Below are positions 6,314 through 27,599 of a DNA stretch of 64,000 bases, one piece after another. Under the pieces are notes generated by a model. The model ran no database searches. It saw nothing but the letters and a program-made list of their open reading frames with translations, and was not told the DNA's origin. The stretch is taken from the sequence record OM456492.1. One strand, 5' to 3'. The position numbers were made by a program, and so were the translations under genes. The stretch's first letter is position 1; each line of letters begins with the position of its first letter.

Positions 6314-6326
6314 TCAGCCTGCAGGC

Positions 6327-7637: not shown

Positions 7638-7663
7638 TGGCTGTTTCCTCTAAGGATTCGGGT

Positions 7664-7672
7664 CATAGTATG
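7664..7672. promoter_or_regulatory. Putative back-to-back late promoters (CATAGTATG)
   Basis: TATG on both strands in the 67-bp divergent gap between 7637 and 7705. Confidence 0.45.
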
Positions 7673-7704
7673 AACTCGACGCCCTCAGAGAAAAGGAGTG
7701 TAAA

Positions 7705-11430: not shown

Positions 11431-14400
11431 ATGAAAACGTATCCTTACGATCCTCGGGGTGTAAATCCCGAGTGTCACTTCATCGAGGAACGTATCATCG
11501 ACTCCGACAATCCTAACGATCGGGTGGTGATGCTAGATCATCGCCCATTTTTCGAAGGATTGGTGGTAACGCTCGCCGGCTCGTCCATACCGCTTACCCG
11601 CGGGACGGACTATGAGCTGGAGTATGCTTTAACACCGTTGGACGACTCGGTGACGACCCCGGTGTTCTGTGGGGTGCATCTTATTAACCCTAAACTGCGT
11701 GGTGCAGTGGTCTTTGAAGGCCAGATGCTCGGGGGTACGTTTTACAGTGGTCTGATTGAGATGTTGGATGAGCTAATTAAGGCTCTCAACAATCCAACGG
11801 CTGCAGATTGGCTGCTTTTAGGTAATCGTCCTTCCCTGTACCCAGCCACCCCTGCAGCGGTAGCTTGGTCAGACATGCTGAATAAAAAGTATGTTGCCTC
11901 TGCAGTGCATGATGTGGAGTTAGATGCCGGGGCGGCCAACGAGCAGATTCGTGAAAAGCTTACCGAGCTGAAAGATACGGTTCTGGCCTTAGGAACTGAA
12001 ATCGCCACATTTAACTACCCCGGACACATTGCGTCCACTAACCCACATGGGACTACCGCGGCGCAGGCCGGGGCGCAGCCAGTCAACCTGAAAACGCCAG
12101 ATACTTTCCTGGCGTATGGAAAGACGTTGCGTCAGTTAACCAGCGAAGTCCGTGCACTGGGCCTGCAACAATCGGATATCGACAAGTACATTTCTAAATG
12201 GGTATCGAAAGAATCCAAAGGGGTGTTTAACGCGACGATATCTGGTACTCGTGCCCTGTTCCGTTCTCCTGCTGGCGAATCCGAAATTGTGTTCTCTGCT
12301 GAGGCATTCACTCTTAAATCTAATGGCTCTGTTGTGTTGGCGTGTGGGTATGCCGACACTACTGAAACCGTCCGGTTTATGGAGTGGAAAGCAGGCATCA
12401 ATACGCTACGTATTGAGTCAACCGGCAGTGCCTTGGGGATGGATAAGCTGACGCTTAACGGAACAACGTTGCTGACCACCACCGCTCTCATGGGCTATCA
12501 ACAAGACCCTGGTGCCGGCGGTGGTACCGGCGGTGGTACCGTAGACCCGGATGACAATAAACTGTACATTAGCGGGGTGAACGGCATTACTTTCACGGGC
12601 AAAGGGTCAAAAGCTGATCCCGTCACCGGGAAGGTCACAGCCAAACCTGCGACGACCTCTGAACCAGGCGTTGTGACGCTAACTGATAAGCCGAGCGATG
12701 TAGTCAAAGGACAAGCAGCCACCCCAGCTTCGCTCTTACCGTACGAGGGTGATCTGTCTTCGTACGTCAGGAAGACAACACTGCTGAATAACCAGCCGAT
12801 GGACACTGGTAGCCGAACGCTAACGAAAAAGGATTTGGGTCTGGACTTGGCTGATAACACAGCTGACGTCGATAAACCACTTTCTGATTCGTTGGCAGAA
12901 GCAGTTACTGGTCTTAGTGATAAAGGCCACCATCACAACTTCGCCGATTTACAGATCCCAACGGCTTCTCAAACAGTGCCCGGCATCTCTCGATACTCTA
13001 CCAACCTAAACGGGTTGGCGGATAATCGCGGCGTTACTCCGAACGTTCTGAACGATTTGTCAAAACGTTTAGACGTAGTTGCAGCTGCACTAGCAAACGC
13101 GAAAGAGGATTCCGTGACTGATTTTGCCGCTGTGCGCGGTAAGACTTGGACTGTGGGGTCTTCACGTACCACCCTCGCCGTAACGGATTTGAATTATTTC
13201 TATCTGTTAAATGGTGCACGTAAAGAGGGGACGGTATCCGGTTCGATAGACCTGCAAACCACGCCGATGTTCCAGTGGTTCTCTCCAGATAACCGTATGG
13301 AGACAACGTGGCAGAACGCGGTAATTAATATCGGTGCTGGTGTTGATTTTAGTGGGTTTGAGGTTGCCGTCCCGGAAACGAACTACGGTGCGCAGATTGG
13401 TTTAACGACAACTGGAATGGGTGATTTGTCGGTCGTTAACCTCTTAGCGAAAACGTGGGTTCGTTGCGACTCTGGTAAGCTGCGGATTTGGGTTCGTGGC
13501 GGTGGTGCTGTTTCTGTTTATCTGGACGGTGAAATTATCGGTGCGGGTATTACAGAAGCGGGGTATCTGGAGGCGACTGTCAAGGAGGGGTGGAAGCAAC
13601 ACTGCTTAGCATTCCGTGCCGAGTGTAACGATAGCGCTAAAGCAGCCGCAATTCGTTTCACAATTTACGACGGTGACTTTGCGGTTGGGGCCTCGGATAA
13701 AAACACCAAAGTTGCCCGCCTGCAGGAGTTTGTTAAGACGCCGAATGGTTTAAGGCATTACCTCTATGTGAACATGATAACCGATGCGTTATATTCGCGC
13801 GCCGAACCTATTGTGGACACGGAAGGTATTAACTTGGAACGCGGCTATATCGGACATATTGATGTACCCGAGACGGGATTGGTTGCAGGTACGACTTACG
13901 AGTTTGAAACGACGTTTGATTTTGGCATGGCGTCCGAACTTAAACGGCACTTCGAAACACGTCTGGCGCACGGAGTGAGTAATGCCGACTGGTCGTTGAC
14001 GGATAACCCAAAAATGTTACCGCTAAACAAAGTCGATCCGTTGCCTAAACAGTGGCTTTATGCGTACCCTAATAGTCCAGTTTCTGGTAACCACTATATT
14101 CGATTAGACCGAGGGTTATTCGATTATAAATTTGATAGTACCATTTCAAGCCTAGTGTTTGTTGGAGCGGTTGTCTCCACAGAAAGCGCATCACCGTACT
14201 GCTGGTTTACACCAAGCAACCCGAAAGAAAAAGGGATGGCGACGTTTGAAGGTTCTGTGGTGGTCGATGTTGATTTGTCGGAAGCACAAACAGTTCGCGT
14301 TCGCGATATCACATTAAACTTCATGGCCCCGTCTGCAGATGATAAAAGCATGACTAGGGTACTGGGATGGAGTAGCAATCGTCCAGAATTGAATTGTGGC

Positions 14401-15573
14401 TTCATCAGGTCTCCTTATAACCAAGCAACTGGAGGCATCATCTCGACCACGCAGGGCAGTGTTACAAATAAGGTGCTTGAAAATCCGAGGGTAATTAAAA
14501 ACCTGACGAGCCAATCTACCGAGTGTTTAGATTTTCTTTCGGTTCATACCGATAGTGAGCTTGCGCCGCTTGGAGATCGTTGGCTTGTACGTTATCGATA
14601 CATTGTTGATACGCAGGTACTGCGCATCTCAATGGTTTCTAAGTTGATAGCCAATCCGCTGGTGCAGGTTTACGAAATGGAATACGACATTCCGTTTGAT
14701 GCGATCGATTACTTTAAAGGTGGGGCGTTAGCCATCCACGTTTCCGGTATTGAAACTCGAGACAACGTGACTATTAACCACGGTTTGATGCAGCCGATCA
14801 TCTCAGATGTGGATATAAATCGTTTCCATTATTTACGTTCACTGTTTGAGTCGTATATTGAAAGGACGCCAGATAGACAGTCTTCCGACCACGAGGAGAT
14901 GACAGTAACAACGGTACCTTTTGCGTCATTTGGAGATAACGTTGATCACCCGGTTACGGAATACATCACGATGTCTGCTGCAAGTGAGGGATATCCGGAA
15001 CTTGCACCGAACGGTAAACTCCCCGCGCCGTTTTATAAAGGGCTGCAGAAACGTGGTGCTCCGCTACTTGAGTCGGCTCCTGCCGACTATACGTCTAACG
15101 GTGGTGAATGGAAGTACGGCCTTATGCGGACTTATCGCCCGACTCAAACTGAGCGTTTTGTGTCGGTAAATGGGACAATGCTCTCTAACTACCCTGGATA
15201 TATCGTCGTGGGTAGTGAGAAAATTCCGGGTAATGTTATACCTTTCAGTGCGTCGACAACAGCTGTTCAGATATCCAGGACTCTTGCCCGCACGAAACCG
15301 ATGCAGCCAATTCACATCGTGTTCGTGCCTCCGGAAGGTTCTGTGCCGCCGTTGCAAGCGAAGTTCACTATTAATGGCGTAGGTAGTAGTGGTAATCCGA
15401 TGTTCGTGATTACTGAAACGACACCGTTAGAACTTCGCACTGGAGGCGAGACGATTCTCATTGAGAAGCGTAATCCATTCCACATCCCCACCAGGACATG
15501 GGATTGGATTTTACAAACGTTGGATACTGAACGTAGAAACGAAGGCAACAACTCGGGTGAGTGGGCCTCTTAG
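11431..15573 (+). CDS. Tail fibre protein
   Basis: 1380 aa. NPHGTT motif, two tail-fibre-repeat-like segments (ATTSEPGVVTL...ATP and ASQTVPGISRY...VTP). Confidence 0.7.
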   Translation: MKTYPYDPRGVNPECHFIEERIIDSDNPNDRVVMLDHRPFFEGLVVTLAGSSIPLTRGTDYELEYALTPLDDSVTTPVFCGVHLINPKLRGAVVFEGQMLGGTFYSGLIEMLDELIKALNNPTAADWLLLGNRPSLYPATPAAVAWSDMLNKKYVASAVHDVELDAGAANEQIREKLTELKDTVLALGTEIATFNYPGHIASTNPHGTTAAQAGAQPVNLKTPDTFLAYGKTLRQLTSEVRALGLQQSDIDKYISKWVSKESKGVFNATISGTRALFRSPAGESEIVFSAEAFTLKSNGSVVLACGYADTTETVRFMEWKAGINTLRIESTGSALGMDKLTLNGTTLLTTTALMGYQQDPGAGGGTGGGTVDPDDNKLYISGVNGITFTGKGSKADPVTGKVTAKPATTSEPGVVTLTDKPSDVVKGQAATPASLLPYEGDLSSYVRKTTLLNNQPMDTGSRTLTKKDLGLDLADNTADVDKPLSDSLAEAVTGLSDKGHHHNFADLQIPTASQTVPGISRYSTNLNGLADNRGVTPNVLNDLSKRLDVVAAALANAKEDSVTDFAAVRGKTWTVGSSRTTLAVTDLNYFYLLNGARKEGTVSGSIDLQTTPMFQWFSPDNRMETTWQNAVINIGAGVDFSGFEVAVPETNYGAQIGLTTTGMGDLSVVNLLAKTWVRCDSGKLRIWVRGGGAVSVYLDGEIIGAGITEAGYLEATVKEGWKQHCLAFRAECNDSAKAAAIRFTIYDGDFAVGASDKNTKVARLQEFVKTPNGLRHYLYVNMITDALYSRAEPIVDTEGINLERGYIGHIDVPETGLVAGTTYEFETTFDFGMASELKRHFETRLAHGVSNADWSLTDNPKMLPLNKVDPLPKQWLYAYPNSPVSGNHYIRLDRGLFDYKFDSTISSLVFVGAVVSTESASPYCWFTPSNPKEKGMATFEGSVVVDVDLSEAQTVRVRDITLNFMAPSADDKSMTRVLGWSSNRPELNCGFIRSPYNQATGGIISTTQGSVTNKVLENPRVIKNLTSQSTECLDFLSVHTDSELAPLGDRWLVRYRYIVDTQVLRISMVSKLIANPLVQVYEMEYDIPFDAIDYFKGGALAIHVSGIETRDNVTINHGLMQPIISDVDINRFHYLRSLFESYIERTPDRQSSDHEEMTVTTVPFASFGDNVDHPVTEYITMSAASEGYPELAPNGKLPAPFYKGLQKRGAPLLESAPADYTSNGGEWKYGLMRTYRPTQTERFVSVNGTMLSNYPGYIVVGSEKIPGNVIPFSASTTAVQISRTLARTKPMQPIHIVFVPPEGSVPPLQAKFTINGVGSSGNPMFVITETTPLELRTGGETILIEKRNPFHIPTRTWDWILQTLDTERRNEGNNSGEWAS

Positions 15574-15601: not shown

Positions 15602-15668
15602 TAGGTAAACCGCCCTTCCGTTATTGGGAGGGCGGTCTCCGTTTTATTACAGATTAGGAGTGTTTGCA

Positions 15669-18600
15669 ATGCCGAGAGAAGATGCGGCGCAGTTTAACGG
15701 TACGCTCAGTACCGCTACTTACCCGAACCGTTATTCGGCGGTCATTCCCGTCGAAGCACCGTTCTATCGCATCGGGTTAACGTTAACCGTTACCGATAAA
15801 ACAACCGGAACCAAACGCAAGTTAATAGAAGGTCTTGATTATTTCTTAGGACATTACTTCCAGGAATTAGCCGAGGCTGAGAACGATGCAATATACGGCA
15901 GCATAATGCTGCTGAACGCCACAGAGGTAGAATACGAGTTACTGTCGGTTGGTCGACGGTATCGCATCCCTGCTTCTGAAATCGGCAAGTATCTGGTTAA
16001 GACAGATATGAAAGACCCGCGTAACTGCGATTGGTCTGAGCTGATGAAATACCCGCCGATTATCTCGCCAATCGATCCGCCAAAAGACCTCGAAGAAGCG
16101 ATTCTTCGCGATGAAATCGTAAAGGCGTTGGAAGATATCCGTCTGGGTATTTTAGAGCGCGCCCACGAGCTGGATGAGGCTTTTGCCGAAGTTACCGACT
16201 TGATTTATCAGAACGGTAAGCAGGTGTTTGATGACGAAATGTATCAACACCATCTGATTAAAAATGCACATGGTTACACCTGCGGCGACATTGGCGCTCT
16301 CCCGGTACTCGGCAAAGCCGTAGATGCGACCAAAGCGTTTGGACGTACCCTGGCAGAGTTAGTGACGTTAATGTCTACCAGCGGCATCCAACAGAAACAC
16401 GTTGACATGCTTCTGGATAATACCCTGGGTGATTTACTGGGCCGTATGCGTGTTCTGAATAACGACGCGATTACGTTCCAAACAACGTCTGGTCACGTTA
16501 TCAGCATGAAAGGTGAGAAGTTCATCATCACCTCGACAAAACCGCTGGTATTAAAAGCCGATCAGGATAACAACGAACCGGGTATCGCTACGGAGTTCAG
16601 TGCTGGTCTGAACACGCTTTGGGTTCACTCGGGTAAAGCAGGTGACAAGTGGGGCGCTTATGATGCAGGTGTGCTTGCACCTGTGTATAACGGCGTGTAT
16701 CTCGTTACACCGGATATGGTTAAGATGTACTTGACCTCGGTGAAGATACTTCCAGCAAACGCCTACTTCAAGTCCAGCGACACGTTGAAGATTTATGGCT
16801 CTGGTAAAGAAACAAACAAAGTTTACATGAATGCGGAGCTGCCTGCAGCAACCACAACTGTGCAGGGTTTGTTTGCGATTACTAACCTTTCGGCGTCCGC
16901 TGCATCGTCCACAGCGATTTCCCAAAAAGCTGTTACTGACTTGAAGAACAAACTCGACGGATATGTGGACGACACGTATACGGTCAACGGTAAGGGGTTT
17001 GTGTTAGACGAAAACGGTCAAATGCATTTAACCTTAACCGCGCTGGATTTCGGTATTGAGAAGATGAACAATACCGGACCGCTGGAGAAACCGGTTACTA
17101 ATGCGTTGCGCACCGTGCTATCAGGCAAGGCACTCTCAACACATACCCACACCATTGCTGATCTCGATAACGTGCCGTACGCATCCACGTCTGTTACAGG
17201 TTTGGCTAAACTGTGGGATGCTATTGACACCACAACAGATAAGATGGTTACTGCCCGCCAGGGTTTCTTGCTCGAACAGAAGATCGGTACACTGAACGAC
17301 AAGATTGCTACGTTGTTGCCAGCATGGACCGTTGGCGGATCATCGTACGGCAACAATAACTTCTTGCCTATACCTGTCCAGGGGAACTACGAAGGGTACA
17401 CCAAAAACCAAACCTGGCAAAAAGGACTGGCGCGTTACGAGGCTGGTAAGGTTTACTCGTTGCGTAATGGTTCCAACGGGAACCCGCCAGGTGACTGGGC
17501 TATCTATTACGCTTACGTGGATGTAACCGCGGACAACACGCTGACGAACATGCAGCAGACGTCCGTACGTTACCGTCCCGTTGGAATGTCGGCGTATCCT
17601 GGGGTGGATCTGGTTGCTATTGTGATTACCGGTACAGATGCAATGATCTGCTTAGGCAGTGACGGTGCGTATTACCTGGTCATCTTTGACGGCACCATTG
17701 ACCATGCAAAACATCATCGTGTTGTTAAAGTTTACTTGGGCGATTATCGATATGGTAATGCCGCGGGCACAGTAACGACGGCACCGTGGGCTCCAAACGT
17801 TTCTACAGACGATTTGATCGTTTGTAATGAACGTATCTACCTGTTGCGTACGGTGCTTACCTCCGGTGACTATTTCGTGAGTATGCGTAGCATCGCGCTC
17901 AACGAACTTAATCTGGGCGGTAGCAACACGTTTGTGGCGGATGCGTTAACGGGCGGGATATTAACGTCGGGTGAAAACGTTTATCTGCGACAGGGACAGA
18001 AACGTGCACCTTCCGATGCGCTCCCAGCACCAGTTACACAGATCTACGCAGACGCGTTAGCGAAGTGGAACAATGCAACCAACTTTGTACATGGTCCTGA
18101 GTGTAATCACGCGATTGGTGTTGATGGGCTGAAATTTCGTGTTGGTTTAACGCCAACAGTCTGGTTTGCCTCCAGCACAGGGCAGACGATTAGCTTTAAA
18201 CAATGGGTGTCAAGCTTTGTTGTCGATTGTAGCGCATTAACGGTAACGCTGGAAGGGGCTGATCGATTCCCTATTGTGGCTGATCTTACCGCGGTTCGTT
18301 ATAACGGTGGTGCTGAGATTGGGATTCCGAGCCGGAAGTGGGGCGAAGGTCAAGCTAATAACCAAACCTTTGCAACATCGCAAGACAAATATATCGTTTC
18401 GCAAGGACATGCCGGCGATCGTGACCTAATGCCAATTGTCGTGATTACAACGTTAGATGACGGTGTGAGTTGGTACGAGTACCTGTCGTGCGACTACAAC
18501 TTCACTGCCAGAAGGTTTAGTGCGGTAACGTTAAACCAGGGACGTGGTTCTATCTACGAGCTGGGTATGGCGTATCCGCTGACTCTGGGAGCGGATTCCA

Positions 18601-20852
18601 GACTTATCTGGTTGTCACAGCCGCGTTCCCGCTTGGCAATTGAAGTTGAGTTTGATCCGAACACCACTTACTCAGGTAAGGCGGGGTATGGCCCAACTAA
18701 CAATCGTCGTCTAGTAGATTCTATCACGTATGAGAATCTGTCGCAGATGTGCCACATTGTTACACCGGCGTCGCCTGGTACAGAGTTAAACGGCTGGTAT
18801 TGCACAGGACCAGAAACATTCCCTTACCACAACGTTTCCGGCACTTTCACGATTCATGCCGATCGATTGACGCTGTCACAAGCTGAATGGAATAAGATGA
18901 AGCAGATGATCATCGACGGAGCACCGGCAGGCGCTGCGAATGGTTATGCTTCGGAATATATCCTTGCCGCAAATAACGCAGGAAAGGCACTGTTCTCCGT
19001 TTGGTTCATCGGTATCGGTACAGCCACGCCGCTCACGTTAGCACAAGTAGCATGTACGCGTACTGTGAACAATGTTAACGTGTTGGATATCTACTACTTT
19101 ACACTGAAACCAACAATCAGCAACGGGCAGGTAACATTCCCCGCGGCGATTTTGGCACTGTTTGACTTCTATAACAACCTCGACTATGGCTTGAAGTACG
19201 CTACGTTGGGTGAGATAACGGGAGGAAAAACACGCCGGCCGGGACAACCTACCTTGGTGTCGGTAGATGGTACGCAGTTCGGGTTGTATCTTCCACACAC
19301 GTTAACTTTGCAGCAGATTGGCGACTTGGGTGCGCTTAACTACGCTGTTGGTCTTACGCTGTCTAATGGTACCTGGACGCGTTCTTCTGCACCACACGGC
19401 GTTGGACGTATGGCACCGTCACACACTCCAGTCAGCCCAGCTTATCTGGCTCATCGTGATCAGGTGATGCTACACAACTCATCTCTCAACTACGTCTACT
19501 GTGGTGGTATCGCAACGTCGTCGAGAGATTTTGTTACGGCTCCTAATTTTAGTGGCCCGACTGAATCGGTCGTCATTGCTGGTGTGGAAACAGCCGAAGG
19601 TTGGCTGGTATATGTGACTGAGGAAGTTAACCTGCGGTTCGGCTCGAGCACTTATAAGCTGCCTACGTGGTATATTGACCTCAGCGAAGCATTTCCAACA
19701 AACCATCAGAACCGGACATTCTACCTGCACGCTAAGGTAGAAAATGGTACACCGAAGTACGTAATGGACGTGATTCAACATCCAGACACTGAAACGGAAC
19801 TCTATATCGGGTATGTTAAAACGGACTCGTCTCGAGTCGTCGAGACTAATGTCGTGCATGTTAAGCGCTTGGGTGCGGTGAAACAGCTGTTGGAACACGC
19901 AGCAGTTGAGAATAAGCATGATGTGGAAGTGGGAAGGGATGCAGCAACGGGCAGACTGGCACCATTACGTAAAGAAGGGATGGGTCCTTTGTCTATCGAT
20001 GGCAAGAAAGGCTATCTGGATAGTCAGTTGCTTTATACCGTATCTGACGCACAGCGTCGCGGTAAAGCGATGGTGTCCAAACGTTTCGAAGGCTTGAAAA
20101 CCTTGCCGGCGTTTACTCAGGCAAACAAGTCGGGGGCGTTTTGGAAACATCCTACAACAATTGCGACGGTAACGGCCGATGAGAACGGTGAAGCGGCATC
20201 GTTGGGAATGGAGTGGGTAGGTATTCCAACGCCCGCCTTCTCTCCGACCTCAACAGCCATGATGGTGGTGATACAAAGTAAATTCGTCGTCCCAGGTACA
20301 CCTGGAGTGGAAACAACCTTTAATGTCAACATCGCCCCATGGGAGACGGTAGATATGTTTCTCTACAACGTCGAGGCGGAAGGTAAGGATGTTAACATTG
20401 ATGAAAGTTCAGAACTGTTAATGCCGACACCACATACCGTGTATCACAAACAGCACTCTCTGCCCGCAGGCGTGCCATGTACGTTTACTTTCGTTGGTGC
20501 GTTGAGTTCCTCAGCGCTTGAGATGGCCAACCAGCGTATTTGCTCTTGGCTTTTCACGGACGCGGGGGGACTACCAATCACCACCGATCTTTCGGATAGT
20601 AAGATTCAAATCTTACCAGCGGCGGGAGAGACCAACGGCACACCAGTTGTTTTTAACAGCCGTAGCTACACGTTTGTGGATGTGGCGGGTGCAATTCCGG
20701 TTGTTACCACGGGCGCTCAGGGTTTATTCCCACCACCGATCGTGGCGTGGGATGGCGATGATCTTACGTTAACGATTGCGCACGATTGGGTGAACGAGAG
20801 AGGATGGCAACAGGCTGATGTTATCCAGGTCAATCTTATGTTCCGTACCTAA
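15669..20852 (+). CDS. Long tail fibre protein
   Basis: About 1727 aa from the ATG with GGAG RBS (track start 15624 is probably too early); fibre repeats ATTTVQGLFAI...AISQKAV and ASTSVTGLAKL. Confidence 0.75.
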   Translation: MPREDAAQFNGTLSTATYPNRYSAVIPVEAPFYRIGLTLTVTDKTTGTKRKLIEGLDYFLGHYFQELAEAENDAIYGSIMLLNATEVEYELLSVGRRYRIPASEIGKYLVKTDMKDPRNCDWSELMKYPPIISPIDPPKDLEEAILRDEIVKALEDIRLGILERAHELDEAFAEVTDLIYQNGKQVFDDEMYQHHLIKNAHGYTCGDIGALPVLGKAVDATKAFGRTLAELVTLMSTSGIQQKHVDMLLDNTLGDLLGRMRVLNNDAITFQTTSGHVISMKGEKFIITSTKPLVLKADQDNNEPGIATEFSAGLNTLWVHSGKAGDKWGAYDAGVLAPVYNGVYLVTPDMVKMYLTSVKILPANAYFKSSDTLKIYGSGKETNKVYMNAELPAATTTVQGLFAITNLSASAASSTAISQKAVTDLKNKLDGYVDDTYTVNGKGFVLDENGQMHLTLTALDFGIEKMNNTGPLEKPVTNALRTVLSGKALSTHTHTIADLDNVPYASTSVTGLAKLWDAIDTTTDKMVTARQGFLLEQKIGTLNDKIATLLPAWTVGGSSYGNNNFLPIPVQGNYEGYTKNQTWQKGLARYEAGKVYSLRNGSNGNPPGDWAIYYAYVDVTADNTLTNMQQTSVRYRPVGMSAYPGVDLVAIVITGTDAMICLGSDGAYYLVIFDGTIDHAKHHRVVKVYLGDYRYGNAAGTVTTAPWAPNVSTDDLIVCNERIYLLRTVLTSGDYFVSMRSIALNELNLGGSNTFVADALTGGILTSGENVYLRQGQKRAPSDALPAPVTQIYADALAKWNNATNFVHGPECNHAIGVDGLKFRVGLTPTVWFASSTGQTISFKQWVSSFVVDCSALTVTLEGADRFPIVADLTAVRYNGGAEIGIPSRKWGEGQANNQTFATSQDKYIVSQGHAGDRDLMPIVVITTLDDGVSWYEYLSCDYNFTARRFSAVTLNQGRGSIYELGMAYPLTLGADSRLIWLSQPRSRLAIEVEFDPNTTYSGKAGYGPTNNRRLVDSITYENLSQMCHIVTPASPGTELNGWYCTGPETFPYHNVSGTFTIHADRLTLSQAEWNKMKQMIIDGAPAGAANGYASEYILAANNAGKALFSVWFIGIGTATPLTLAQVACTRTVNNVNVLDIYYFTLKPTISNGQVTFPAAILALFDFYNNLDYGLKYATLGEITGGKTRRPGQPTLVSVDGTQFGLYLPHTLTLQQIGDLGALNYAVGLTLSNGTWTRSSAPHGVGRMAPSHTPVSPAYLAHRDQVMLHNSSLNYVYCGGIATSSRDFVTAPNFSGPTESVVIAGVETAEGWLVYVTEEVNLRFGSSTYKLPTWYIDLSEAFPTNHQNRTFYLHAKVENGTPKYVMDVIQHPDTETELYIGYVKTDSSRVVETNVVHVKRLGAVKQLLEHAAVENKHDVEVGRDAATGRLAPLRKEGMGPLSIDGKKGYLDSQLLYTVSDAQRRGKAMVSKRFEGLKTLPAFTQANKSGAFWKHPTTIATVTADENGEAASLGMEWVGIPTPAFSPTSTAMMVVIQSKFVVPGTPGVETTFNVNIAPWETVDMFLYNVEAEGKDVNIDESSELLMPTPHTVYHKQHSLPAGVPCTFTFVGALSSSALEMANQRICSWLFTDAGGLPITTDLSDSKIQILPAAGETNGTPVVFNSRSYTFVDVAGAIPVVTTGAQGLFPPPIVAWDGDDLTLTIAHDWVNERGWQQADVIQVNLMFRT

Positions 20853-20899
20853 CAGATAGCGCTATGGGGCAAGGAAGCCCCAATCAAAGGAGTTTGGCA

Positions 20900-22102
20900 A
20901 TGGCCGAAATCATTTATCAGTACCCGCTCGACCTTACCGGGACATTAACGTCGAACGCCGTTACGCGGCGTATTACGTTAGGTTCTGGTAAAGTTAACCG
21001 GGCTTTTGCATTTCCTGACGGAGCTTTCTACGCGGATACTTTCCGCTTAGCGGCTGCGAACAAACCGGGTGTCTACCCGTACAAACGTGGTACAGACTAC
21101 GAGCTGATTTTTGCACATACTGCATATCAGAAAATGACCAAGAACCGCGAAGTGGTCATGGGTGTGGTGGTAACTAACTCGGCCATTCCTACTGATATCG
21201 AAGTCTCTGCGCAAGTCGTTGGTGGTTTTCAGTCTGCGAACGTCGAAGGCATCCGACAAGCGATTGCGTCGTTGAAAATTGAAGACCGTGTGGTGGACTT
21301 CAAGGATCTTCGAAACGTGCCCGATACGTTCCCGTCCGCACCGACGTATAAAGACCTTGGCGATATCTACGGTTTTGAGTATATCATTACCGTGCTCGCG
21401 GGGATTAAAGATGCGATTAACTCCGGCTCTGCAGTACAGCTGGAAGAAATTAAAGGTATTCTGGACGGTCTGAAAAACGACTTCCTCGATGCCTTAAATA
21501 CCCACATCAACGCCGAAGGTAACGTACACAATCTCGACATTCATCAGGTTAATGGCCTGACGGAGACGGAGATTCGTGCTTTGATTCAAAGTGTACAGAC
21601 TGCCATTGACGCCACTATCAGAGATATCGGCGACTTAAGAGCAGCAGACACGGCGTTGGGGCAACGCATCGATGCAATTGTGGCTTCGTTAGCCGCGTGG
21701 AACGACCAGCTTAATGTGGTTGCGCAAAACTACCAGAAGATGTCGTTAGCATTAGCTAACCTTAATTCTCTGGTGTTGCAATTACAGAAGAAGGTTAACG
21801 ATCTGCAGTCTGCGCTGAATGAAACAAATCAGCGTGTCACGGATCTTGAGAATCAGGGCAAAGACTTCCAACAGCAAATTGATAACCTGCAAGGACAAAT
21901 CAACAGTCTTAAAACTCAGGTTGTAAACAACACCAACGCAATTTCGCAGGCAAACCAGAATCTGGCGAACCATGCGGCTGCGGATAACCCACACCCGAAT
22001 TACCTCCATAAACAGTATGGCGGTGTTGTGCAGGCTGCTGTTCACGTCAACAACAACCTCACCTCGCGCGACGACGTTCAAGCTGAAGCGGGTACTAAGT
22101 AA
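20900..22102 (+). CDS. Coiled-coil virion/tail-fibre-associated protein
   Basis: Start reassigned to the ATG with AGGAG RBS; shared N-terminal domain, long heptad region, HAAADNPH motif. Confidence 0.7.
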   Translation: MAEIIYQYPLDLTGTLTSNAVTRRITLGSGKVNRAFAFPDGAFYADTFRLAAANKPGVYPYKRGTDYELIFAHTAYQKMTKNREVVMGVVVTNSAIPTDIEVSAQVVGGFQSANVEGIRQAIASLKIEDRVVDFKDLRNVPDTFPSAPTYKDLGDIYGFEYIITVLAGIKDAINSGSAVQLEEIKGILDGLKNDFLDALNTHINAEGNVHNLDIHQVNGLTETEIRALIQSVQTAIDATIRDIGDLRAADTALGQRIDAIVASLAAWNDQLNVVAQNYQKMSLALANLNSLVLQLQKKVNDLQSALNETNQRVTDLENQGKDFQQQIDNLQGQINSLKTQVVNNTNAISQANQNLANHAAADNPHPNYLHKQYGGVVQAAVHVNNNLTSRDDVQAEAGTK

Positions 22103-22115
22103 CTTGTTTACGAGC

Positions 22116-22141
22116 CGGACTATGTTTATGGACATAGTCCG
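22116..22141 (+). other. Intercistronic 26-nt hairpin CGGACT-N14-AGTCCG, no U tract
   Basis: Directly upstream of the first Cys-rich peptide gene. Confidence 0.6.
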
Positions 22142-22167
22142 CTCATTCTACTTTTTAAGGAAGCGTA

Positions 22168-22560
22168 ATGGCGATATCTATTAAAGACGTCAGAAACCGC
22201 GTCCAGATAGTCGAAGCTAACATGGCGACAGGCCCCCGTATCGACGCGCAAGTGGCCTCTAAAGCCCATAACGCGGCAGACCGATTTGGGGGTTGGACGA
22301 AAACACAGCTAGATTGCGGCGGGACATGTTCTTGGACGTGCTCTAACGGTTGCTCGCATGGCTGTTCGAGCTGTTCAGGAAGCTGTTCTGCTTCTTGTAT
22401 CGGTAGCTGTTCTTCGACGTGTGGCGGTAACTGTTCTGGTTGTTCTGGTTGTTCTGGTGGTTGCAGTAGTAGCTGTACCGGTAACTGCACAGGTGGTTGC
22501 GGTGGCTCTTGTTCCGCAAACTGCTCCGGGGCCTGCTCCGGCGGCTGTTCAGGTCGCTAA
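22168..22560 (+). CDS. CxxxC-repeat radical SAM target peptide 1 (RiPP-like precursor)
   Basis: 49-aa Cys-free leader, then a core with 21 Cys in C-x2/3 repeats of Gly/Ser/Thr; adjacent to rSAM genes. Confidence 0.85.
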   Translation: MAISIKDVRNRVQIVEANMATGPRIDAQVASKAHNAADRFGGWTKTQLDCGGTCSWTCSNGCSHGCSSCSGSCSASCIGSCSSTCGGNCSGCSGCSGGCSSSCTGNCTGGCGGSCSANCSGACSGGCSGR

Positions 22561-22570
22561 GGGGGATTAA

Positions 22571-22975
22571 ATGGCAATTGGATTAAAAGAACTGAATAAC
22601 CGATTAAACACGATCGATGCAAACGCTCTAAAGAATACCACGAATGTGCAAAACTACATTCGCAATAAAGCTACGAATAACGCCGACTTGTTCGCAGGTC
22701 AAGGCCGTTCGCACTATGACTGTGGTGGCACATGCTCTTTTAGTTGCTCGAGTTGTTCTGGCGGATGTACTGGGTCTGCGACAGGTGGTTGTGGGTCGAC
22801 TTGTTCGGCAAACTGTGTATCAGGCTGTAGCAGCAGCTGCACGGGCTGTAGCTCTTCATGCTCTGGTGGTTGTAGCGGCACGTGCACAGGCAGCTGTTCT
22901 GGGGGTTGTGGTAAATCCTGCTCCGCAAACTGCTCAGGTGCGTGCTCTGGTGGTTGTTCAGGTCCTAACTCCTAA
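22571..22975 (+). CDS. CxxxC-repeat radical SAM target peptide 2
   Basis: 50-aa leader, core with 20 Cys; ends CSANCSGACSGGCSG as in peptide 1. Confidence 0.85.
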   Translation: MAIGLKELNNRLNTIDANALKNTTNVQNYIRNKATNNADLFAGQGRSHYDCGGTCSFSCSSCSGGCTGSATGGCGSTCSANCVSGCSSSCTGCSSSCSGGCSGTCTGSCSGGCGKSCSANCSGACSGGCSGPNS

Positions 22976-22990
22976 CTGACGGAGGCTTAT

Positions 22991-23197
22991 GTGATCAGTC
23001 TCAAGGCTATTCGAAACCGTCTCGTTACGGCAGAAGGCTACATTACAACCGCGCAGGCAAACAACTATATCGCTAACCAGGGCACCGTGTCGACCACAAA
23101 TAACCTGGCTGGCTTACCGCTTTCTCACTATAACTGTAATGGTGGGTGTAGCTGGTCCTGCAGCGGAAGCTGTAGCCGTGGAGCGGGGAATCGATAA
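22991..23197 (+). CDS. Short CxxxC-repeat target peptide 3
   Basis: GTG start with GGAGG RBS; leader homologous to peptides 1 and 2; core CNGGCSWSCSGSC (4 Cys). Confidence 0.8.
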   Translation: MISLKAIRNRLVTAEGYITTAQANNYIANQGTVSTTNNLAGLPLSHYNCNGGCSWSCSGSCSRGAGNR

Positions 23198-23219: not shown

Positions 23220-24107
23220 ATGAAAAACGATTTGCATCTTGCGTATAAAACCACATTCAACCACCCGCTGCATCTATCTTCCCCAGATTCGGTGCGTGCA
23301 CATCTCGCTGACAAAGTCAGACTGATTGCACAGATTCCTGGTGAGTGGCCAAAGGTTCGTGGTCGCTTCTTGACCGACAAGAAGAACTACACCGTAGAAA
23401 ATACGTTTAAGATCCGTGATATGGTTGCAGAGGCCATCGTTATCTTTAACGGCGATGGTAACTCTCGCGGCGTGTTGGTTGACGGTAAGTATTTCTTCAG
23501 TGAAGGGATTCTGAACAACAGTGTCGATTTAGAACTGATGTTTACACCGTTTGACGAACTCGAAGCAAAACCGATGGCGCGCCGTTGGTGGAGTCCGGAC
23601 TATCTGGGCTCGTTCCCTTACTACTTTGTACTGGTACCTGCCGATACGGAAACGTATTTCGACACCGAACCGTACATCGATATCGAGGGATATAAAGAAC
23701 TCGGCATCACCCGTTTAGCGGACATGATGGCGTATAGCTATAAGTTCGTGTGGGATAAAAAGCGTTCTGTCTGGTATGCGTTGACTGACGATTTTGAAAT
23801 CACCAAACGTATTCGTAAGCCGTGGATGCAACACCTGGTTCAAACCCGATATGGGGATTACCCGGCGACAGAAGCGGATTTGAGTAAGCTGGTAAGCTTC
23901 CTCTTAACGAAGGTGGATTTAACGAAAGAAGAAGCAGAAGCTGTTTCTGAGATTCGTAGTCGTTCGGTAACGTTGGCCGATTTGAAACGCTTGAACGAAA
24001 GACACGCCGACCTGAACAAAATTTTAGCTGCCTATCACGACCCGATGTTACTGGTGCCCGGCGCTAATGTAGACGAAGATCCTTTATTCGCCATTGATTA
24101 TATTTAA
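23220..24107 (+). CDS. Hypothetical protein in the rSAM cassette
   Basis: 295 aa, tightly packed between the peptides and the first rSAM gene. Confidence 0.8.
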   Translation: MKNDLHLAYKTTFNHPLHLSSPDSVRAHLADKVRLIAQIPGEWPKVRGRFLTDKKNYTVENTFKIRDMVAEAIVIFNGDGNSRGVLVDGKYFFSEGILNNSVDLELMFTPFDELEAKPMARRWWSPDYLGSFPYYFVLVPADTETYFDTEPYIDIEGYKELGITRLADMMAYSYKFVWDKKRSVWYALTDDFEITKRIRKPWMQHLVQTRYGDYPATEADLSKLVSFLLTKVDLTKEEAEAVSEIRSRSVTLADLKRLNERHADLNKILAAYHDPMLLVPGANVDEDPLFAIDYI

Positions 24108-24129: not shown

Positions 24130-25044
24130 ATGACAGATCAAGTAGAATCCAGGATCTCGTCTGAACTGTACGACAAACCGTCAATTCTGTCGGTTGTCGC
24201 AACTTCTAAGTGTAACTTAGACTGTAGCTTCTGTGGAGGGGCTTATTACATGGATAGAGAAGATACTTCTCGTGAGTTTCAACGTGAAGAGATTCTCTCG
24301 ATTTTAGAGAAGAATCCGGATATCGGTGAGATTCATTGGACGGGCGGTGAGCCGCTGTTAGCGCAGCGCAAGATTGAAGACTTCGTGAACGAGTTAAAGG
24401 AGTCTCATCCGAACCTCCGTCATCACATGTACACCAACGGTTTAAAGATGCGTAAATCACATCTGCCGTTGCTGAAACAGTTCGACCTTATCTTTGTGTC
24501 CATTGACGGCTACAAGAAGTCGGAACGTCCGTTTATGAACTTTGTAAACGGTGGTAATCACGAAGCGCTGGAAGTGCTGTACGAGCTGGACAACTATTAC
24601 ACCTGGGGTGTGATGACGCGTGACCAGTTAGGTGATAAACGCTGGTACGAAGATTTCATCGAGCTGCACCGAGCAATCTATCATTACCGTCCAGGTGGTA
24701 TGTCGTTGCTGTTTGATGCGATGATGCCGAAACCGTTATCGCCAGACCACGTCATGAACTTCATGTACGGGTATTGGAAAATACTCGACAATATCGAACG
24801 CCTTAACATGCAGAACGATTCTGAATGTGGGCTTGCGATCAGTAAAATGTTCGATACCGAGTGCAACACGTGCAGTGAAGTGCTGTGGCTTAACGCCGAC
24901 GGTACGCAGGAGCAAATTCAGAACGCCCCAGAGATATTGGAAGTCGGCTGTAATCGCCTGGCGCGTTCTATCGGCGTTGATGCGTATAACTACATCAACC
25001 GTGTAATTTCTGCTAAGCGTAAACGGGCGGCGAACAATGAGTAA
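24130..25044 (+). CDS. Radical SAM enzyme 1
   Basis: CNLDCSFC (CxxxCxxC), WTGGEP, YTNG and VSIDG motifs; short Cys-containing C-terminal extension. Start reassigned to the ATG with GGAG RBS. Confidence 0.92.
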   Translation: MTDQVESRISSELYDKPSILSVVATSKCNLDCSFCGGAYYMDREDTSREFQREEILSILEKNPDIGEIHWTGGEPLLAQRKIEDFVNELKESHPNLRHHMYTNGLKMRKSHLPLLKQFDLIFVSIDGYKKSERPFMNFVNGGNHEALEVLYELDNYYTWGVMTRDQLGDKRWYEDFIELHRAIYHYRPGGMSLLFDAMMPKPLSPDHVMNFMYGYWKILDNIERLNMQNDSECGLAISKMFDTECNTCSEVLWLNADGTQEQIQNAPEILEVGCNRLARSIGVDAYNYINRVISAKRKRAANNE

Positions 25045-26365
25045 CAGCGAACAGCAAATCCAGTACACACCACGCACGTATCAGGTTGTGACTAACCTGT
25101 CATGTAATCTGGACTGCGAATACTGCTACGAGCGTAAATATCCTCGTAACAACAAAGTAGCAGACGTGATTGATTTTATCCACGCTTGTTTCGAGCGTGA
25201 TAAAGATATCCCGAACGTCGAGGTCATCATCGATATCATCGGTGGTGAGCCGTTCATGCAGCCTAAACTTCTTTTGGCGGCCTTTGAAACCGCAGAGAAG
25301 TTATGCGCAGAACACAATCGCCCGTATATGTTCAGTATCTCCACGAACGGTACACTTCTGGACCGTCCGCTGAACAAAGAAATTATCGAGCGCTGGAAAG
25401 ACAAACTGTCTATTGGGGTCTCCATCGATGGTTTACCTGAAGTCCATGACAAATATCGTATCTTTACCACGACGCGTGAAGGGTCGTACGAAGCTGCGGT
25501 ACGCGGTTACAATTATCTGAAGAGTGTTGGCATCGCTGAACTGGGTGTAAAGGCGACGTTTACGATCGATACATTGCCGCACTATGCCGCCAGCATGAAA
25601 TCGTTAATTGACATGTCCGGCGGTGGTACCATTTCTGGTAACGTAACGTACGAAGATATCCTGCCGCGCCATATGGCGTTGGATATCGCGAACCAGATGA
25701 TGGACGTGATGGACTACTGGATTGAGAAGGGTCTGCACACCAACCCGCGTAACACGATTACACACATCATCCCGGATGGCCTGAACTTTATGGCAACTTG
25801 GGACCCGGATTGGCGTGACAAACTCTTACATGACGACTCTGTTCGTCTCGACCCAGAACGCCTGAAACCGTACTGCGGTACGTTGACGCACATGACCTGT
25901 CTCGGCTTTGATCGCAAGATTTACGGTTGTAACCGTTTCATGTCCACGGTAACTTCCCGTTCTGCTGTAGCAGAACTGGTCGGTCGTGAGTTTGTGAGCC
26001 TGGACGGTGGTAAGCTGTTAGAAGAGATTCAAACGCAGTACACCAACTACCCAGAAACCTGTTTAGGGTGTCCGATGAAACACAGTTGCGGTAGCTGCGC
26101 AGCAGCATCGTACGAAAACGGTGAAGGTACACTGGAAGACCGTAAAGCGTATCACGCCGAGCGTCGTCAGTGTGGTTGGACTACTGCGAAGCTGATGGCG
26201 GCGGAATATTGGTATCAGAAAACTGGTACGACCCGCGCATCAGATTTGCATGATAAATCCATGTGCTATTGTTCACGTTGTGTACGCCAACGTGCTGAAG
26301 CAGAAAAATTACAAAACGGAGCCCAGAATGAAGTCAATACTGATTCACAATTTTACGAAGCGTAA
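25037..26365 (+). CDS. Radical SAM/SPASM peptide maturase
   Basis: CNLDCEYC, GGEP, STNGT and SIDG motifs; SPASM-type Cys array (YCG...C...IYGC...CLGCPMKHSCGSC...C) plus an extra CYCSRC. Confidence 0.93.
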   Translation: MSNSEQQIQYTPRTYQVVTNLSCNLDCEYCYERKYPRNNKVADVIDFIHACFERDKDIPNVEVIIDIIGGEPFMQPKLLLAAFETAEKLCAEHNRPYMFSISTNGTLLDRPLNKEIIERWKDKLSIGVSIDGLPEVHDKYRIFTTTREGSYEAAVRGYNYLKSVGIAELGVKATFTIDTLPHYAASMKSLIDMSGGGTISGNVTYEDILPRHMALDIANQMMDVMDYWIEKGLHTNPRNTITHIIPDGLNFMATWDPDWRDKLLHDDSVRLDPERLKPYCGTLTHMTCLGFDRKIYGCNRFMSTVTSRSAVAELVGREFVSLDGGKLLEEIQTQYTNYPETCLGCPMKHSCGSCAAASYENGEGTLEDRKAYHAERRQCGWTTAKLMAAEYWYQKTGTTRASDLHDKSMCYCSRCVRQRAEAEKLQNGAQNEVNTDSQFYEA

Positions 26366-26894
26366 ACTGCACTTGGTCGATCGCTTCCTGCGCAAAAGCA
26401 AGCTGTACAATGTGCACGCAATTGTGGCAGGGGAAGACTTCACTGATGAAATCCAAAGCCTGTTGATTAAATACGGGCTGAACGTGATGATCCCGGTCTA
26501 CTGCGTTGAGAAAGGACACGAGTCTGTCGCGGAAATCGAAAAGCGCAACCCTGGCTTTGAGAAGCGACTGCTTGCATACCCACGCCACAAAATCGAACTG
26601 CTACGTCACTCTATTGATGAAGCCAGTCCTGAAAGTTTAGTGGCTTTGGGCTTGTCTTTCCCGCGGATGCGTATTCGTAACTTACGCTCCAATAACCCGG
26701 TTGACGCTTATTACACAGAGCGTCAAATCTTCGAAGAACACCTGCTCCCGCAGTTGGAAGAAGAAGAGCAACACAACATTTCTCTGTTGTGGGCCGGTAA
26801 CCTCGATCAGGACTTCCAGATGCTGGACTTCGGTTTGTTGTTAGAACTTGGCCTGATTGAGGAGGACGAATGTCTGTTACTGACAAAAGCTTAA
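26328..26894 (+). CDS. Hypothetical protein in the rSAM cassette
   Basis: 188 aa from the ATG with GGAG RBS, overlapping the rSAM stop. Confidence 0.75.
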   Translation: MKSILIHNFTKRKLHLVDRFLRKSKLYNVHAIVAGEDFTDEIQSLLIKYGLNVMIPVYCVEKGHESVAEIEKRNPGFEKRLLAYPRHKIELLRHSIDEASPESLVALGLSFPRMRIRNLRSNNPVDAYYTERQIFEEHLLPQLEEEEQHNISLLWAGNLDQDFQMLDFGLLLELGLIEEDECLLLTKA

Positions 26895-27541
26895 CGAACG
26901 AAGAGATCCGCGCCCGTTATTTCCAGCGTGATTTGCCGATTGATCGTCACGGTAATTTCATGGAACGAATCGGTGCGCAGGATCAGGGCCGTACAGGCTT
27001 TTGCGCTCTGCTCCATTATCATCTCATCGAAGGGATGTCTGATAAAGAAGCCCTGGCACGCATGAAGCTGTATGAGATGTCGGAGATTGAAGCTAACTTC
27101 ACATTGAAACGCACGAAAGAGTTTATTGCTAATGTGCTGGAGATTGATCTCGACGAAATTCGCGGGAATCTAAAATCTACCGCACGTTACATTTACGAAG
27201 ACGTGCAGAAGATGCTGTTGGAACTTGACCACCGCTACGAAGATGAGCGTCATGGTTATATCGAGTTTGAAGGTAGTCACTTTCAAGCCGATGAATCGTC
27301 GCGTACCATCCTCGGTCAATACATTCAGGCAGATACCGCACCAGAATACTGGCTCGATACGCTGAATACTAAGCACAGTCCGTTTACAGTAGACCAATGT
27401 AAAGCGTTGTTGGGCGCTATTGTTGCACGCGACCAAGTGTTGCACTCAGCAATGGCAGATAACAAACGTCAAATCCGTGAGTTAGCTGAAAAGCGCGATT
27501 ACACTGGATTAAAAACATTGTCCGAATCTCTCGGCATGTAA
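26870..27541 (+). CDS. DUF4376-domain tail-fibre-assembly-type protein
   Basis: C-terminal half G..FQADESSR...YWLDTLN...FTVDQCKAL...NKRQIREL matches the DUF4376 pattern of tail-associated phage genes. Confidence 0.6.
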   Translation: MSVTDKSLTNEEIRARYFQRDLPIDRHGNFMERIGAQDQGRTGFCALLHYHLIEGMSDKEALARMKLYEMSEIEANFTLKRTKEFIANVLEIDLDEIRGNLKSTARYIYEDVQKMLLELDHRYEDERHGYIEFEGSHFQADESSRTILGQYIQADTAPEYWLDTLNTKHSPFTVDQCKALLGAIVARDQVLHSAMADNKRQIRELAEKRDYTGLKTLSESLGM

Positions 27542-27544
27542 GCA

Positions 27545-27599
27545 AAGAAAATAAAGGCCCTACCTCCCTTCGGGGAGGTAGGTACCTTTATTTTATTTC
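27545..27599. terminator. Bidirectional intrinsic terminator
   Basis: CCTACCTCCC-TTCG-GGGAGGTAGG with flanking A and T tracts; ends the tail-fibre/rSAM operon. Confidence 0.85.

Follow-up and report, generated by a model that had tools for sequence, protein, structure and literature searches.

What might three small cysteine-rich genes be doing in the tail-fiber operon of a Salmonella jumbo phage, a short distance ahead of two genes for radical S-adenosylmethionine (radical-SAM) enzymes? The question arises in a window of 64,000 nucleotides (nt), the whole stretch of DNA analyzed here, which comes from record OM456492.1 and is identical to the sequence of Salmonella phage SaP7, a SPN3US-like jumbo phage and member of Seoulvirus SPN3US (98–99% identity to SPN3US). 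An original prediction took the three gene products, called pep1, pep2, and pep3 below, for precursor peptides in which an N-terminal leader is followed by a Cys-rich core. As set out below, they are probably not classical precursors of RiPPs (peptides made on the ribosome and modified after translation), as the leader and first Cys-containing unit are homologous to the shaft end and junction of tail fibers. We consider it probable, short of any certainty, that the three open reading frames (ORFs) encode free-standing tail-fiber tip modules that are cross-linked by the radical-SAM cassette downstream. The features that the original prediction had assigned (ORF coordinates, Cys counts of 21, 20, and 4, leader strings, core starts, and a single aromatic residue in each core) are all exact in the sequence and are as follows.

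22168..22560, plus strand: pep1, 130 residues, ATG start, 21 Cys; leader, residues 1–49; core, 81 residues, with Cys mostly spaced 4 apart.
22315..22341, plus strand: first unit of pep1, C-G-G-T-C-S-W-T-C, residues 50–58.
22571..22975, plus strand: pep2, 134 residues, ATG start, 20 Cys; leader, residues 1–50.
22721..22747, plus strand: first unit of pep2, C-G-G-T-C-S-F-S-C, residues 51–59.
22991..23197, plus strand: pep3, 68 residues, GTG start, 4 Cys; leader, residues 1–48; core, 20 residues.
23135..23161, plus strand: first unit of pep3, C-N-G-G-C-S-W-S-C, residues 49–57.

These are real genes, and the frame that encodes the Cys residues is under strong purifying selection. Comparing ten SPN3US-like phages from five genera of this clade, we found that the Cys frame was the only one of six without stops across pep1 and pep2 in all ten, each of the other frames being interrupted in at least nine of the ten for pep1 and likewise for pep2. 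The pep1 cores of SaP7 and STsAS differ by 43 synonymous and 2 non-synonymous codon changes, with no Cys lost and eight Cys codons changed synonymously. When the SaP7 cores were compared with those of two relatives, we counted 36–48 synonymous versus 2–13 non-synonymous changes, again with every Cys retained, and 7–10 synonymous Cys-codon changes per long peptide. Evolution is slower in the cores than in the leaders, the synonymous to non-synonymous ratio for pep1 being 43:2 in the core and 13:14 in the leader. A purine-rich ribosome-binding site lies 5–9 nt upstream of each of the three starts, and gaps of 10–22 nt separate pep1, pep2, pep3, and the next gene inside the fiber operon. Moreover, phrog_6085, a family of phage proteins of unknown function, matches the full length of pep1, pep2, and pep3, leader as well as core (E = 8.9e-40, 3e-41, and 3e-24, respectively).

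Several deposited annotations use other frames or the other strand. The SaP7 record annotates 22358–22570 and 22716–22979 instead of the Cys-frame genes, SPN3US gp166 is a wrong-frame ORF (the three Cys-frame ORFs being unannotated in JN641803, the SPN3US record), the ORFs called here in several Erwinia phage records are on the minus strand, and only the Machina record annotates all three genes. One could therefore suppose that the region is simply a GC-rich DNA repeat and that the true ORFs are the GenBank calls (22358–22570, 22716–22979, gp166, and those on the minus strand). This idea is refuted by the stops in every other frame (nine or more of the ten phages) and by the dominance of synonymous change in the Cys frame, and the strong ribosome-binding sites at all three starts, the phrog_6085 matches, and the Machina annotation further oppose it; we give it practically no credence. 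Within the cores, the DNA repeats are just 60–80% alike and Ser is encoded by TCN as well as AGY codons, which indicates that it is the protein repeat that selection maintains; on the same two observations, we rejected an origin by recent DNA slippage. Among cultured phages, the leader family was found only in SPN3US-like jumbo phages, in 62 records, often at a place with no annotated gene. In several SPFM records (LR535901–LR535913), the matches to the radical-SAM, accessory, and pep2 sequences are fragmentary or of low identity over short stretches, in contrast to near-identical sister genomes, and may reflect assembly or frameshift problems.

The common leader posited by the original prediction was recovered in all ten phages, in which the trio keeps the same gene order and the leader is 46–50 residues long. 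Its N-terminal part keeps a hydrophobic 3-4-3 spacing and its middle part is conserved paralog by paralog, but the R/N-N-R portion of the proposed motif is lost in Derbicus-like phages. BLASTP aligned leader 1 with leader 2 at E = 2e-9 and leader 2 with leader 3 at just E = 0.04, and the pep1 leader holds an additional Trp. An AlphaFold2 model of the pep2 monomer has helices at residues 5–21 (predicted local distance difference test, pLDDT, ~80) and 24–33, so the helical character that had been proposed for the leader is borne out by modeling; the docking partner that a recognition or oligomerization helix would call for is taken up below.

Sequence constraint is strongest in the first unit, where C, G, C, and S are invariant in all 30 peptides of the ten phages. 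The residue after C-S is W in 27 of them and F in the other 3, with F restricted to Seoulvirus pep2, whereas the second residue past the aromatic varies among C, S, and A. This W (pep1 and pep3) or F (pep2) is the sole Phe, Trp, or Tyr of its core; in pep1, a single His is present in addition. The cores are ~30% Ser, 25% Cys, 25% Gly, and 7–9% Thr, and those of pep1 and pep2 contain no Asp or Glu. Ser directly follows Cys in two-thirds of the units, more than half have Gly at the next position, and successive Cys residues are spaced 4 apart in 166 of 200 intervals in the pep1 set and in 165 of 196 in the pep2 set. As had been noted, pep1 and pep2 share an identical string at their C-terminal ends, a 15-residue stretch near both termini.

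Cys number is similarly constrained. All ten phages have 21 Cys in pep1 and 20–23 in pep2, whereas pep3 has 4, or only 2–3 in Derbicus- and Wellington-like phages, whose third peptide retains little beyond C-x-G-x-C-S-W. The same long-long-short trio is present in three further metagenomic loci, with Cys counts of 21/not counted/2, 21/20/5, and 31/35/5, and the suggestion that the short third peptide is a one-unit member of the family thus holds in the ten relatives and in these three loci. Within a phage, the Cys numbers of pep1 and pep2 track one another (21/20, 21/21, 21/23, and 31/35), the long pair staying alike in length inside one phage and varying from phage to phage, and these matched lengths together with the constantly short pep3 suggest co-assembly in register.

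The likely identity of the peptides emerged from other phages, in which the same module ends longer proteins. Distant relatives of the large radical-SAM enzyme (33–47% identity) again lie inside phage tail modules. In a Deferribacter prophage (locus L013), a 302-residue protein with typical fiber repeats ends in the same junction, first unit, and long CXXX run, and in a T4-like phage of 213 kb (L015/L016), a 568-residue fiber protein has the same C-terminal module and a precomputed match to PF27846. We searched a module profile against 1.84 billion representative proteins, which gave 363 matches, and examined the best 150. In 42 of these 150, which are mutually distant and 60–560 residues long, junction and first unit open the Cys run, and in most of the 42 the run ends within ~6 residues of the C-terminus. 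The general layout is an amphipathic helix, a junction, the first unit C-x-x-x-C-S-W-x-C, and C-[S/T]-G-x units up to the C-terminus, the junction having the pattern [N/D]-[A/S]-x-x-L-x-G at 8–14 residues ahead of the first Cys and a Tyr two residues ahead of it. We counted alignment columns in 35 representatives with a spacing of 4 and at most 50% mutual identity, numbering the first Cys as position 0. In the junction, L occupies –10 in 26, G –8 in 32, and Y –2 in 28 of the 35; in the first unit, C at 0 and +4 and S at +5 occur in all 35, W at +6 in 34, T at +7 in 31, and C at +8 in 33. In the W/F-x-C site that had been proposed as invariant, the aromatic residue is W in 34 of 35 and belongs to the most conserved part of the family, and the third residue is C, S, or A in the ten phages.

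The N-terminal parts of the longer proteins match collagen-like tail fibers, T4 collar and proximal fiber families, and the T7 tail-fiber N-terminal domain, while their C-terminal parts match phrog_6085 from profile position 8–35 onward, which means that these fiber C-termini include part of what was called the leader. Alignment thus establishes, as far as comparison of sequences can, that the pep module is homologous to fiber C-termini, with the leader plus first unit corresponding to the last stretch of the shaft plus the junction, and this homology speaks against the view of the peptides as precursors. Because the same module ends bona fide tail fibers with the same cassette downstream, pep1–pep3 are most likely fiber-tip modules rather than secreted RiPPs. 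Further matches of the profile search were giant proteins, 1,460–1,800 residues long with 103–168 Cys and CXXX runs of up to 647 residues (P0196, P0201–P0206, and others), and 17 of the best 150 matches were short bacterial proteins with a twin-arginine signal ahead of the Cys run.

Downstream of the trio in the window lie an accessory protein gene and the two enzyme genes.

23220..24107, plus strand: accessory protein, homolog of SPN3US gp165, 295 residues, phrog_8030.
24130..25044, plus strand: small radical-SAM enzyme, 304 residues, with the ORF open from a TTG at 24094; PF04055 match, 1.1e-15.
25037..26365, plus strand: large radical-SAM/SPASM enzyme, 442 residues, whose start overlaps the stop of the small-enzyme gene by 8 nt.

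This cassette is conserved, and its enzymes and Cys-repeat targets co-occur tightly. The order target, accessory protein (~235–310 residues), small radical-SAM enzyme, large radical-SAM enzyme recurs in L013 (the prophage), L018 (a contig that resembles a temperate phage and encodes an integrase), L019 (a phage of 41 kb whose terminase is T7-like), and the metagenomic locus L102, and it is rearranged in a second metagenomic locus, L014. In IMG/VR, 429 viral contigs encode relatives of the large enzyme, and we checked the best 80 for Cys-run ORFs; 77 of the 80 have one within 7 kb on the same strand, as does the window, where the large enzyme is encoded 1.8 kb downstream of the Cys-repeat genes. 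Among 86 loci examined, 19 have an aromatic first unit, and all 19 have two radical-SAM genes, 17 of them together with the accessory protein. The remaining 67 are mostly from gut-metagenome phages (25–27% identity), and nearly all combine a single enzyme with a Cys run that lacks the aromatic first unit and encode no accessory protein; the exceptions are one C-T-W variant and two loci, L031 and L035, that have a small enzyme and no first-unit aromatic. In L035, a viral contig of 284 kb, the small and large enzymes are fused in one 686-residue ORF (6137–8194) with cluster motifs at residues 23 and 299, a hint that the two enzymes act together. No protease, exporter, or immunity gene was found in the cassettes of the window, L013–L016, L018, L019, and L102.

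Some features of the gut-metagenome variant (L037–L100 and L012), which has one radical-SAM enzyme and no accessory protein, may be recorded here. Its Cys-run proteins contain up to 92 Cys, and in some of them the run lies near the N-terminus and is followed by a tail of 200–400 residues; some have an N-terminal helix resembling the SPN3US leader. The L012 enzyme, the one case inspected, has ~90 residues ahead of the matched region.

The large enzyme has a CX3CX2C motif at residues 23–30 (C23, C27, and C30) and eight further Cys residues, at 280, 288, 298, 342, 345, 351, 354, and 379, that are present in all ten sequences and imply two auxiliary clusters. Its best NCBIfam matches are TIGR04115 (125.6 bits, cut-off 350) and PapB NF047865 (113.6 bits, cut-off 340), and its best match in the PDB is CteB (5wgg, 3e-10), in an alignment that begins at CteB residue 106. 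With just 22 residues ahead of the cluster motif, the large enzyme has no N-terminal recognition domain. In the small enzyme, CX3CX2C spans residues 28–35 and three conserved C-terminal Cys residues give a twitch-type appearance; its NCBIfam matches are generic only. Families that make cyclophanes (YhhB, AmcB, FxsB, and GrrM/OscB) scored 28.5–59.2 bits against cut-offs of 310–445, in alignments covering only the generic radical-SAM N-terminal core. On the target side, the sole NCBIfam match of pep1 and pep2 is TIGR04114 (18.5 and 17.1 bits, below the cut-off of 20), and pep3 has none. A Pfam search gave no match for the peptides, nor a PF27846 match for ten CXXX-ending fiber proteins, although whether the Pfam copy used contains PF27846 is unclear. 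The deposited starts of the large enzyme in SaP7 (25256) and of the small enzyme in SPN3US (~40 codons late) both leave out the CX3CX2C motif.

The accessory protein has no Pfam, NCBIfam, or PDB sequence match. AlphaFold2 predicted its structure with confidence (pLDDT 88.8; predicted template modeling score, pTM, 0.84), as a β-rich N-terminal half and a helical C-terminal half, and a fold search with this model found none like it in the PDB (best E = 0.19, TM ≤0.18) and only its own ortholog in BFVD. A recognizable RiPP recognition element, protease, or fiber chaperone was considered for this protein and rejected, as neither sequence nor fold matched one. By profile–profile alignment (hhalign), it is related with 95–97% probability to the proteins at the same position in L013, L014, L018, and L019, the part conserved across these distant phages being the C-terminal 140 residues, whereas the accessory profile showed no similarity to a 224-residue protein at that position in the T4-like L015.

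How might such a tip be built? In many other phages, the module forms the distal end of a fiber protein, and we propose that in SPN3US-like jumbo phages it has been split off as a trio of two matched long peptides and one short one. Maturation would take place in the cytoplasm through the accessory protein, the small radical-SAM enzyme, and the large SPASM radical-SAM enzyme, with the large enzyme using the Cys thiols of the CXXX run to form covalent cross-links arranged as a ladder. Thioethers are our best guess for these links, because the nearest characterized enzymes make thioethers and because the reducing cytoplasm bars reliance on disulfides. The outcome would be a rigid fiber tip that is indifferent to redox state and to proteases. 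Helix and junction would serve assembly, by trimerization or other oligomerization or by docking to the shaft, and perhaps recognition by the accessory protein or the enzymes, and they would probably be retained on the protein uncleaved. Pep1 and pep2 would be co-assembled in register, with pep3 adding only the first layer. What we infer here is that radical-SAM enzymes modify the module, that thioethers are the product, that the peptides enter the virion, what part pep3 plays, and that the leader is retained.

Several observations weigh against this proposal. AlphaFold2 rendered the pep2 core as low-confidence coil, although a core with no confident fold also fits a segment that needs partners, cross-links, or metal. 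A leader profile run against all ORFs of the window matched pep1–pep3 only and provided neither a fourth copy nor a docking partner for the helix. The family scores are all far below curated cut-offs (125.6 of 350, 113.6 of 340, and 18.5 and 17.1 of 20 bits). The long cores lack the Asp and Glu residues that serve as acceptors for PapB and QhpD, and the type of link made by those enzymes can therefore not apply; the chemistry may be of another kind altogether. Part of the co-occurrence of enzyme and Cys run may simply reflect common descent of one enzyme clade. Finally, the peptides are not among published virion proteins, which is uninformative because the ORFs are absent from the SPN3US annotation that was searched and because the cores are single tryptic pieces of 53–85 residues. 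Calculated trypsin cleavage of the leaders yields peptides 6–13 residues long; the calculated masses of the unmodified peptides with Met1 are 12,487.7 (pep1), 12,821.9 (pep2), and 7,110.9 Da (pep3).

Other accounts of the same genes deserve consideration. In a classical RiPP system, the leaders would guide the enzymes and then be cut off, and the cores would be released as a bacteriocin-like or signaling compound. Small peptide genes beside two radical-SAM maturases, a common conserved leader joined to a Cys-rich core, enzymes related to ranthipeptide maturases, and a conserved [A/G]-G pair 8–9 residues ahead of the first Cys that resembles a double-glycine site all lend this idea some appeal. 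The Gly of that pair, however, is the Gly of the fiber junction (32 of 35), where it is preceded by A, N, G, or D, and the combination of leader and core forms the C-terminus of tail-fiber proteins of 185–560 residues, in which there is accordingly no leader. The genes are placed inside a late fiber operon, the cores change less rapidly than the leaders do, the examined cassettes encode no protease, exporter, or immunity protein (cleavage by a host enzyme is conceivable), the large enzyme lacks a recognition domain, and the confident accessory-protein model matches no fold in the PDB. We regard a classical RiPP product as very unlikely. A metal-thiolate or iron-sulfur role for the CXXX run, as a metal-holding needle on the fiber axis whose Cys residues stay thiolates while the enzymes perform some other step, for example on the first unit, is unlikely to nearly the same degree. 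Some phage fiber tips are stabilized by metal ions on the trimer axis, the core composition (25% Cys, 30% Ser, 25% Gly, and one aromatic residue) and the lack of an autonomous fold in the AlphaFold2 model would suit such a needle, and the one-unit pep3 indicates that the first unit can be a target by itself. Nevertheless, a Cys run, whatever its length, is almost always accompanied by a SPASM maturase (77 of 80 viral loci), and this linkage holds in the gut-phage variant with its single enzyme and no aromatic first unit; moreover, the closest enzyme families make thioethers from Cys, and the cassette contains no metal-handling gene.

A variant that keeps the cross-linked run divides the work between two chemistries, with the large enzyme linking the CXXX run and the small enzyme plus accessory protein linking the first-unit aromatic, for example through a cyclophane-type C–C bond. 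The distribution of the parts is suggestive, in that W is found in 34 of 35 diverse representatives, a first-unit W, F, or Y in 20 of the 22 loci that have the small enzyme, and neither small enzyme nor accessory protein in the 64 single-enzyme loci, which lack the aromatic first unit; in addition, pep3 retains little beyond that unit. This correlation could be phylogenetic, as the two-enzyme loci are also the closest relatives, and L031 and L035 have the small enzyme without the aromatic. The residue two past the aromatic varies (C, S, or A), and the cyclophane families (YhhB, AmcB, FxsB, and GrrM) score only 28–59 bits against cut-offs of 310–445. Two chemistries are possible, in our judgment, yet doubtful.

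Returning to the cross-linked fiber tip as the preferred account, we asked how it relates to known systems. By best sequence match, the window system lies nearest to the TIGR04114/TIGR04115/PF27846 system of CXXX-repeat targets and maturases, which was defined by comparative genomics. The likeness consists of tandem CXXX repeats beside a SPASM radical-SAM enzyme, of TIGR04115 and TIGR04114 as best matches, and of relatives with PF27846. The system differs in target, a fiber-tip module with its specific junction and aromatic first unit, and in composition, as a second enzyme joins the cassette together with the accessory protein, and its scores stay below the cut-offs; furthermore, many cellular members of the CXXX-repeat system carry a twin-arginine signal, unlike the SPN3US-type peptides.

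Among characterized systems, PapA/PapB (freyrasin) and CteA/CteB (SCIFF, thermocellin) resemble the present one in that a SPASM enzyme acts on Cys residues four apart. PapB works without a leader (PMC12715619) and uses Asp/Glu acceptors (PMC10739248). The window's large enzyme falls below the PapB cut-off of 340, the cores have no C-x-x-x-D/E acceptor, and the N-terminal domain of CteB is absent; the window targets also differ from PapA and CteA in being proteins of 68–134 residues, or whole fiber proteins in other phages, encoded in a virion operon. The closest parallel in concept is QhpC/QhpD of quinohemoprotein amine dehydrogenase, in which the radical-SAM enzyme QhpD introduces intramolecular Cys thioethers into a structural subunit, QhpC (PMC11002830). 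The match to TIGR03906 (55.5 bits) does not reach the cut-off of 453, however, and QhpD uses Asp/Glu acceptors, forms a small number of links in place of a long repeat, and is non-viral. In the His-Xaa-Ser system (HxsA–D), a short-period repeat peptide is likewise combined with two radical-SAM enzymes, one large and one small, and with a fourth protein, but HxsB scored 75.1 bits against the large enzyme and HxsC 45.0 bits against the small one (cut-offs 370 and 267.9), its repeat unit is H-x-S, and a fiber context is lacking. Triceptides share an aromatic plus two residues and a peptide encoded beside radical-SAM genes; they differ in that the enzymes show no specific similarity, the third residue varies here, and the aromatic is missing from some loci that have the small enzyme.

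From the side of phage structure, the long-tail-fiber tips and adhesins of T-even phages are small, Gly/Ser-rich, low-complexity distal modules, sometimes encoded by a separate gene after the fiber gene. They are not known to be rich in Cys and depend on chaperones instead of radical-SAM enzymes, and no sequence relationship to the window peptides was found, in an analysis that did not test for one. Few covalent modifications have been described for phage particles, and a search of the open-access literature found no radical-SAM-made modification of a phage particle; the same literature had nothing on the CXXX-repeat family, PF27846, or TIGR04114/5 (apart from one incidental mention) or on radical-SAM enzymes in phage fibers.

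The setting of the trio in the window is a fiber/baseplate block of three giant virion proteins, a 412-residue coiled-coil protein, the three small ORFs, the 295-residue accessory protein, the two radical-SAM genes, and two small proteins, in that order; the trio lies ahead of a tail assembly chaperone gene. The Cys-rich ORFs directly follow four paralogous genes for fiber-like virion proteins. These genes, the two downstream genes, and an RNA hairpin ahead of pep1 are located as follows.

7705–11418, plus strand: giant fiber-like virion protein, homolog of SPN3US gp170, 1237 residues, N-terminal domain phrog_2163.
11431–15573, plus strand: giant fiber-like virion protein, homolog of SPN3US gp169, 1380 residues, N-terminal domain phrog_2163.
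15624–20852, plus strand: giant fiber-like virion protein, homolog of SPN3US gp168, 1742 residues, N-terminal domain phrog_2163.
20864..22102, plus strand: fiber-like virion protein, homolog of SPN3US gp167, ORF of 412 residues (GenBank start 20900), phrog_2163 match of 5.8e-109 and a coiled-coil Pfam match.
22112..22144, plus strand: RNA hairpin between the fiber gene and pep1, minimum free energy –22.9 kcal/mol, z = –2.9, 10-bp stem.
26250..27541, plus strand: two downstream proteins, homologs of SPN3US gp162 and gp161 (the latter with DUF4376), syntenic in SPN3US-like phages.

The N-terminal phrog_2163 domain is common to all four consecutive fiber-like proteins, and the 412-residue one continues as a long coiled coil and stops soon after it, which makes it a candidate for the shaft that would bear the tip modules. 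This protein resembles the N-terminal third of the longest one (1742 residues), followed by coiled coil. Gp167–gp170 were all detected in purified SPN3US virions, gp168–gp170 being named as baseplate or tail-fiber candidates (PMC5694885), and gp167 carries no head assignment (PMC5694885 Suppl. Table 1). The same proteomic study found gp167–gp173, and gp161–gp166 are not among its listed proteins (PMC5694885); absence of gp161–gp165 from virions fits enzymes and helpers that stay outside the particle. The homologs of gp162 and gp161 are missing from the cassette in other phages and are thus neighbors rather than core parts.

The hairpin at 22112–22144 has a U-rich stretch and then the pep1 ribosome-binding site on its 3′ side. 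In single-sequence folds, a hairpin forms at the same place in all ten relatives, with different stem letters and a common TATG loop; alignment-based consensus folding gave no structure, so that the support comes from the ten single-sequence folds. This hairpin may be a conserved RNA element, either a terminator or attenuator or a processing or stabilizing element. A second hairpin, a perfect GC-rich palindrome at 27559–27582 with a terminator score on both strands, separates the end of the plus-strand fiber and radical-SAM block from a convergent minus-strand gene.

If pep1–pep3 are indeed cross-linked tip modules, the two radical-SAM genes in the fiber operon of SPN3US-like phages would be explained, and three missing genes would be added to ~60 deposited genomes, along with a defined, conserved accessory protein whose confident predicted fold has no relative among solved structures. 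We further propose, tentatively and with less conviction than we hold for the SPN3US-like trio itself, that these modules represent a widespread class of phage fiber tips in which Cys repeats are made into cross-link ladders by a radical-SAM pair, possibly through a new linkage, with the three-gene tip, in which two long peptides in register would be joined by a short cap, as the form found in SPN3US-like phages. The phenomenon would be common, because more than 400 IMG/VR viral contigs carry relatives of the enzyme, and the cross-link may be new, because the cores are without the acidic acceptors of PapB. It would give the orphan CXXX-repeat/radical-SAM family its first biological role and would, for the first time, make a virion structural protein the substrate of radical-SAM (RiPP-type) modification, with chemistry of this type building receptor-facing fiber tips within the reducing cytoplasm.

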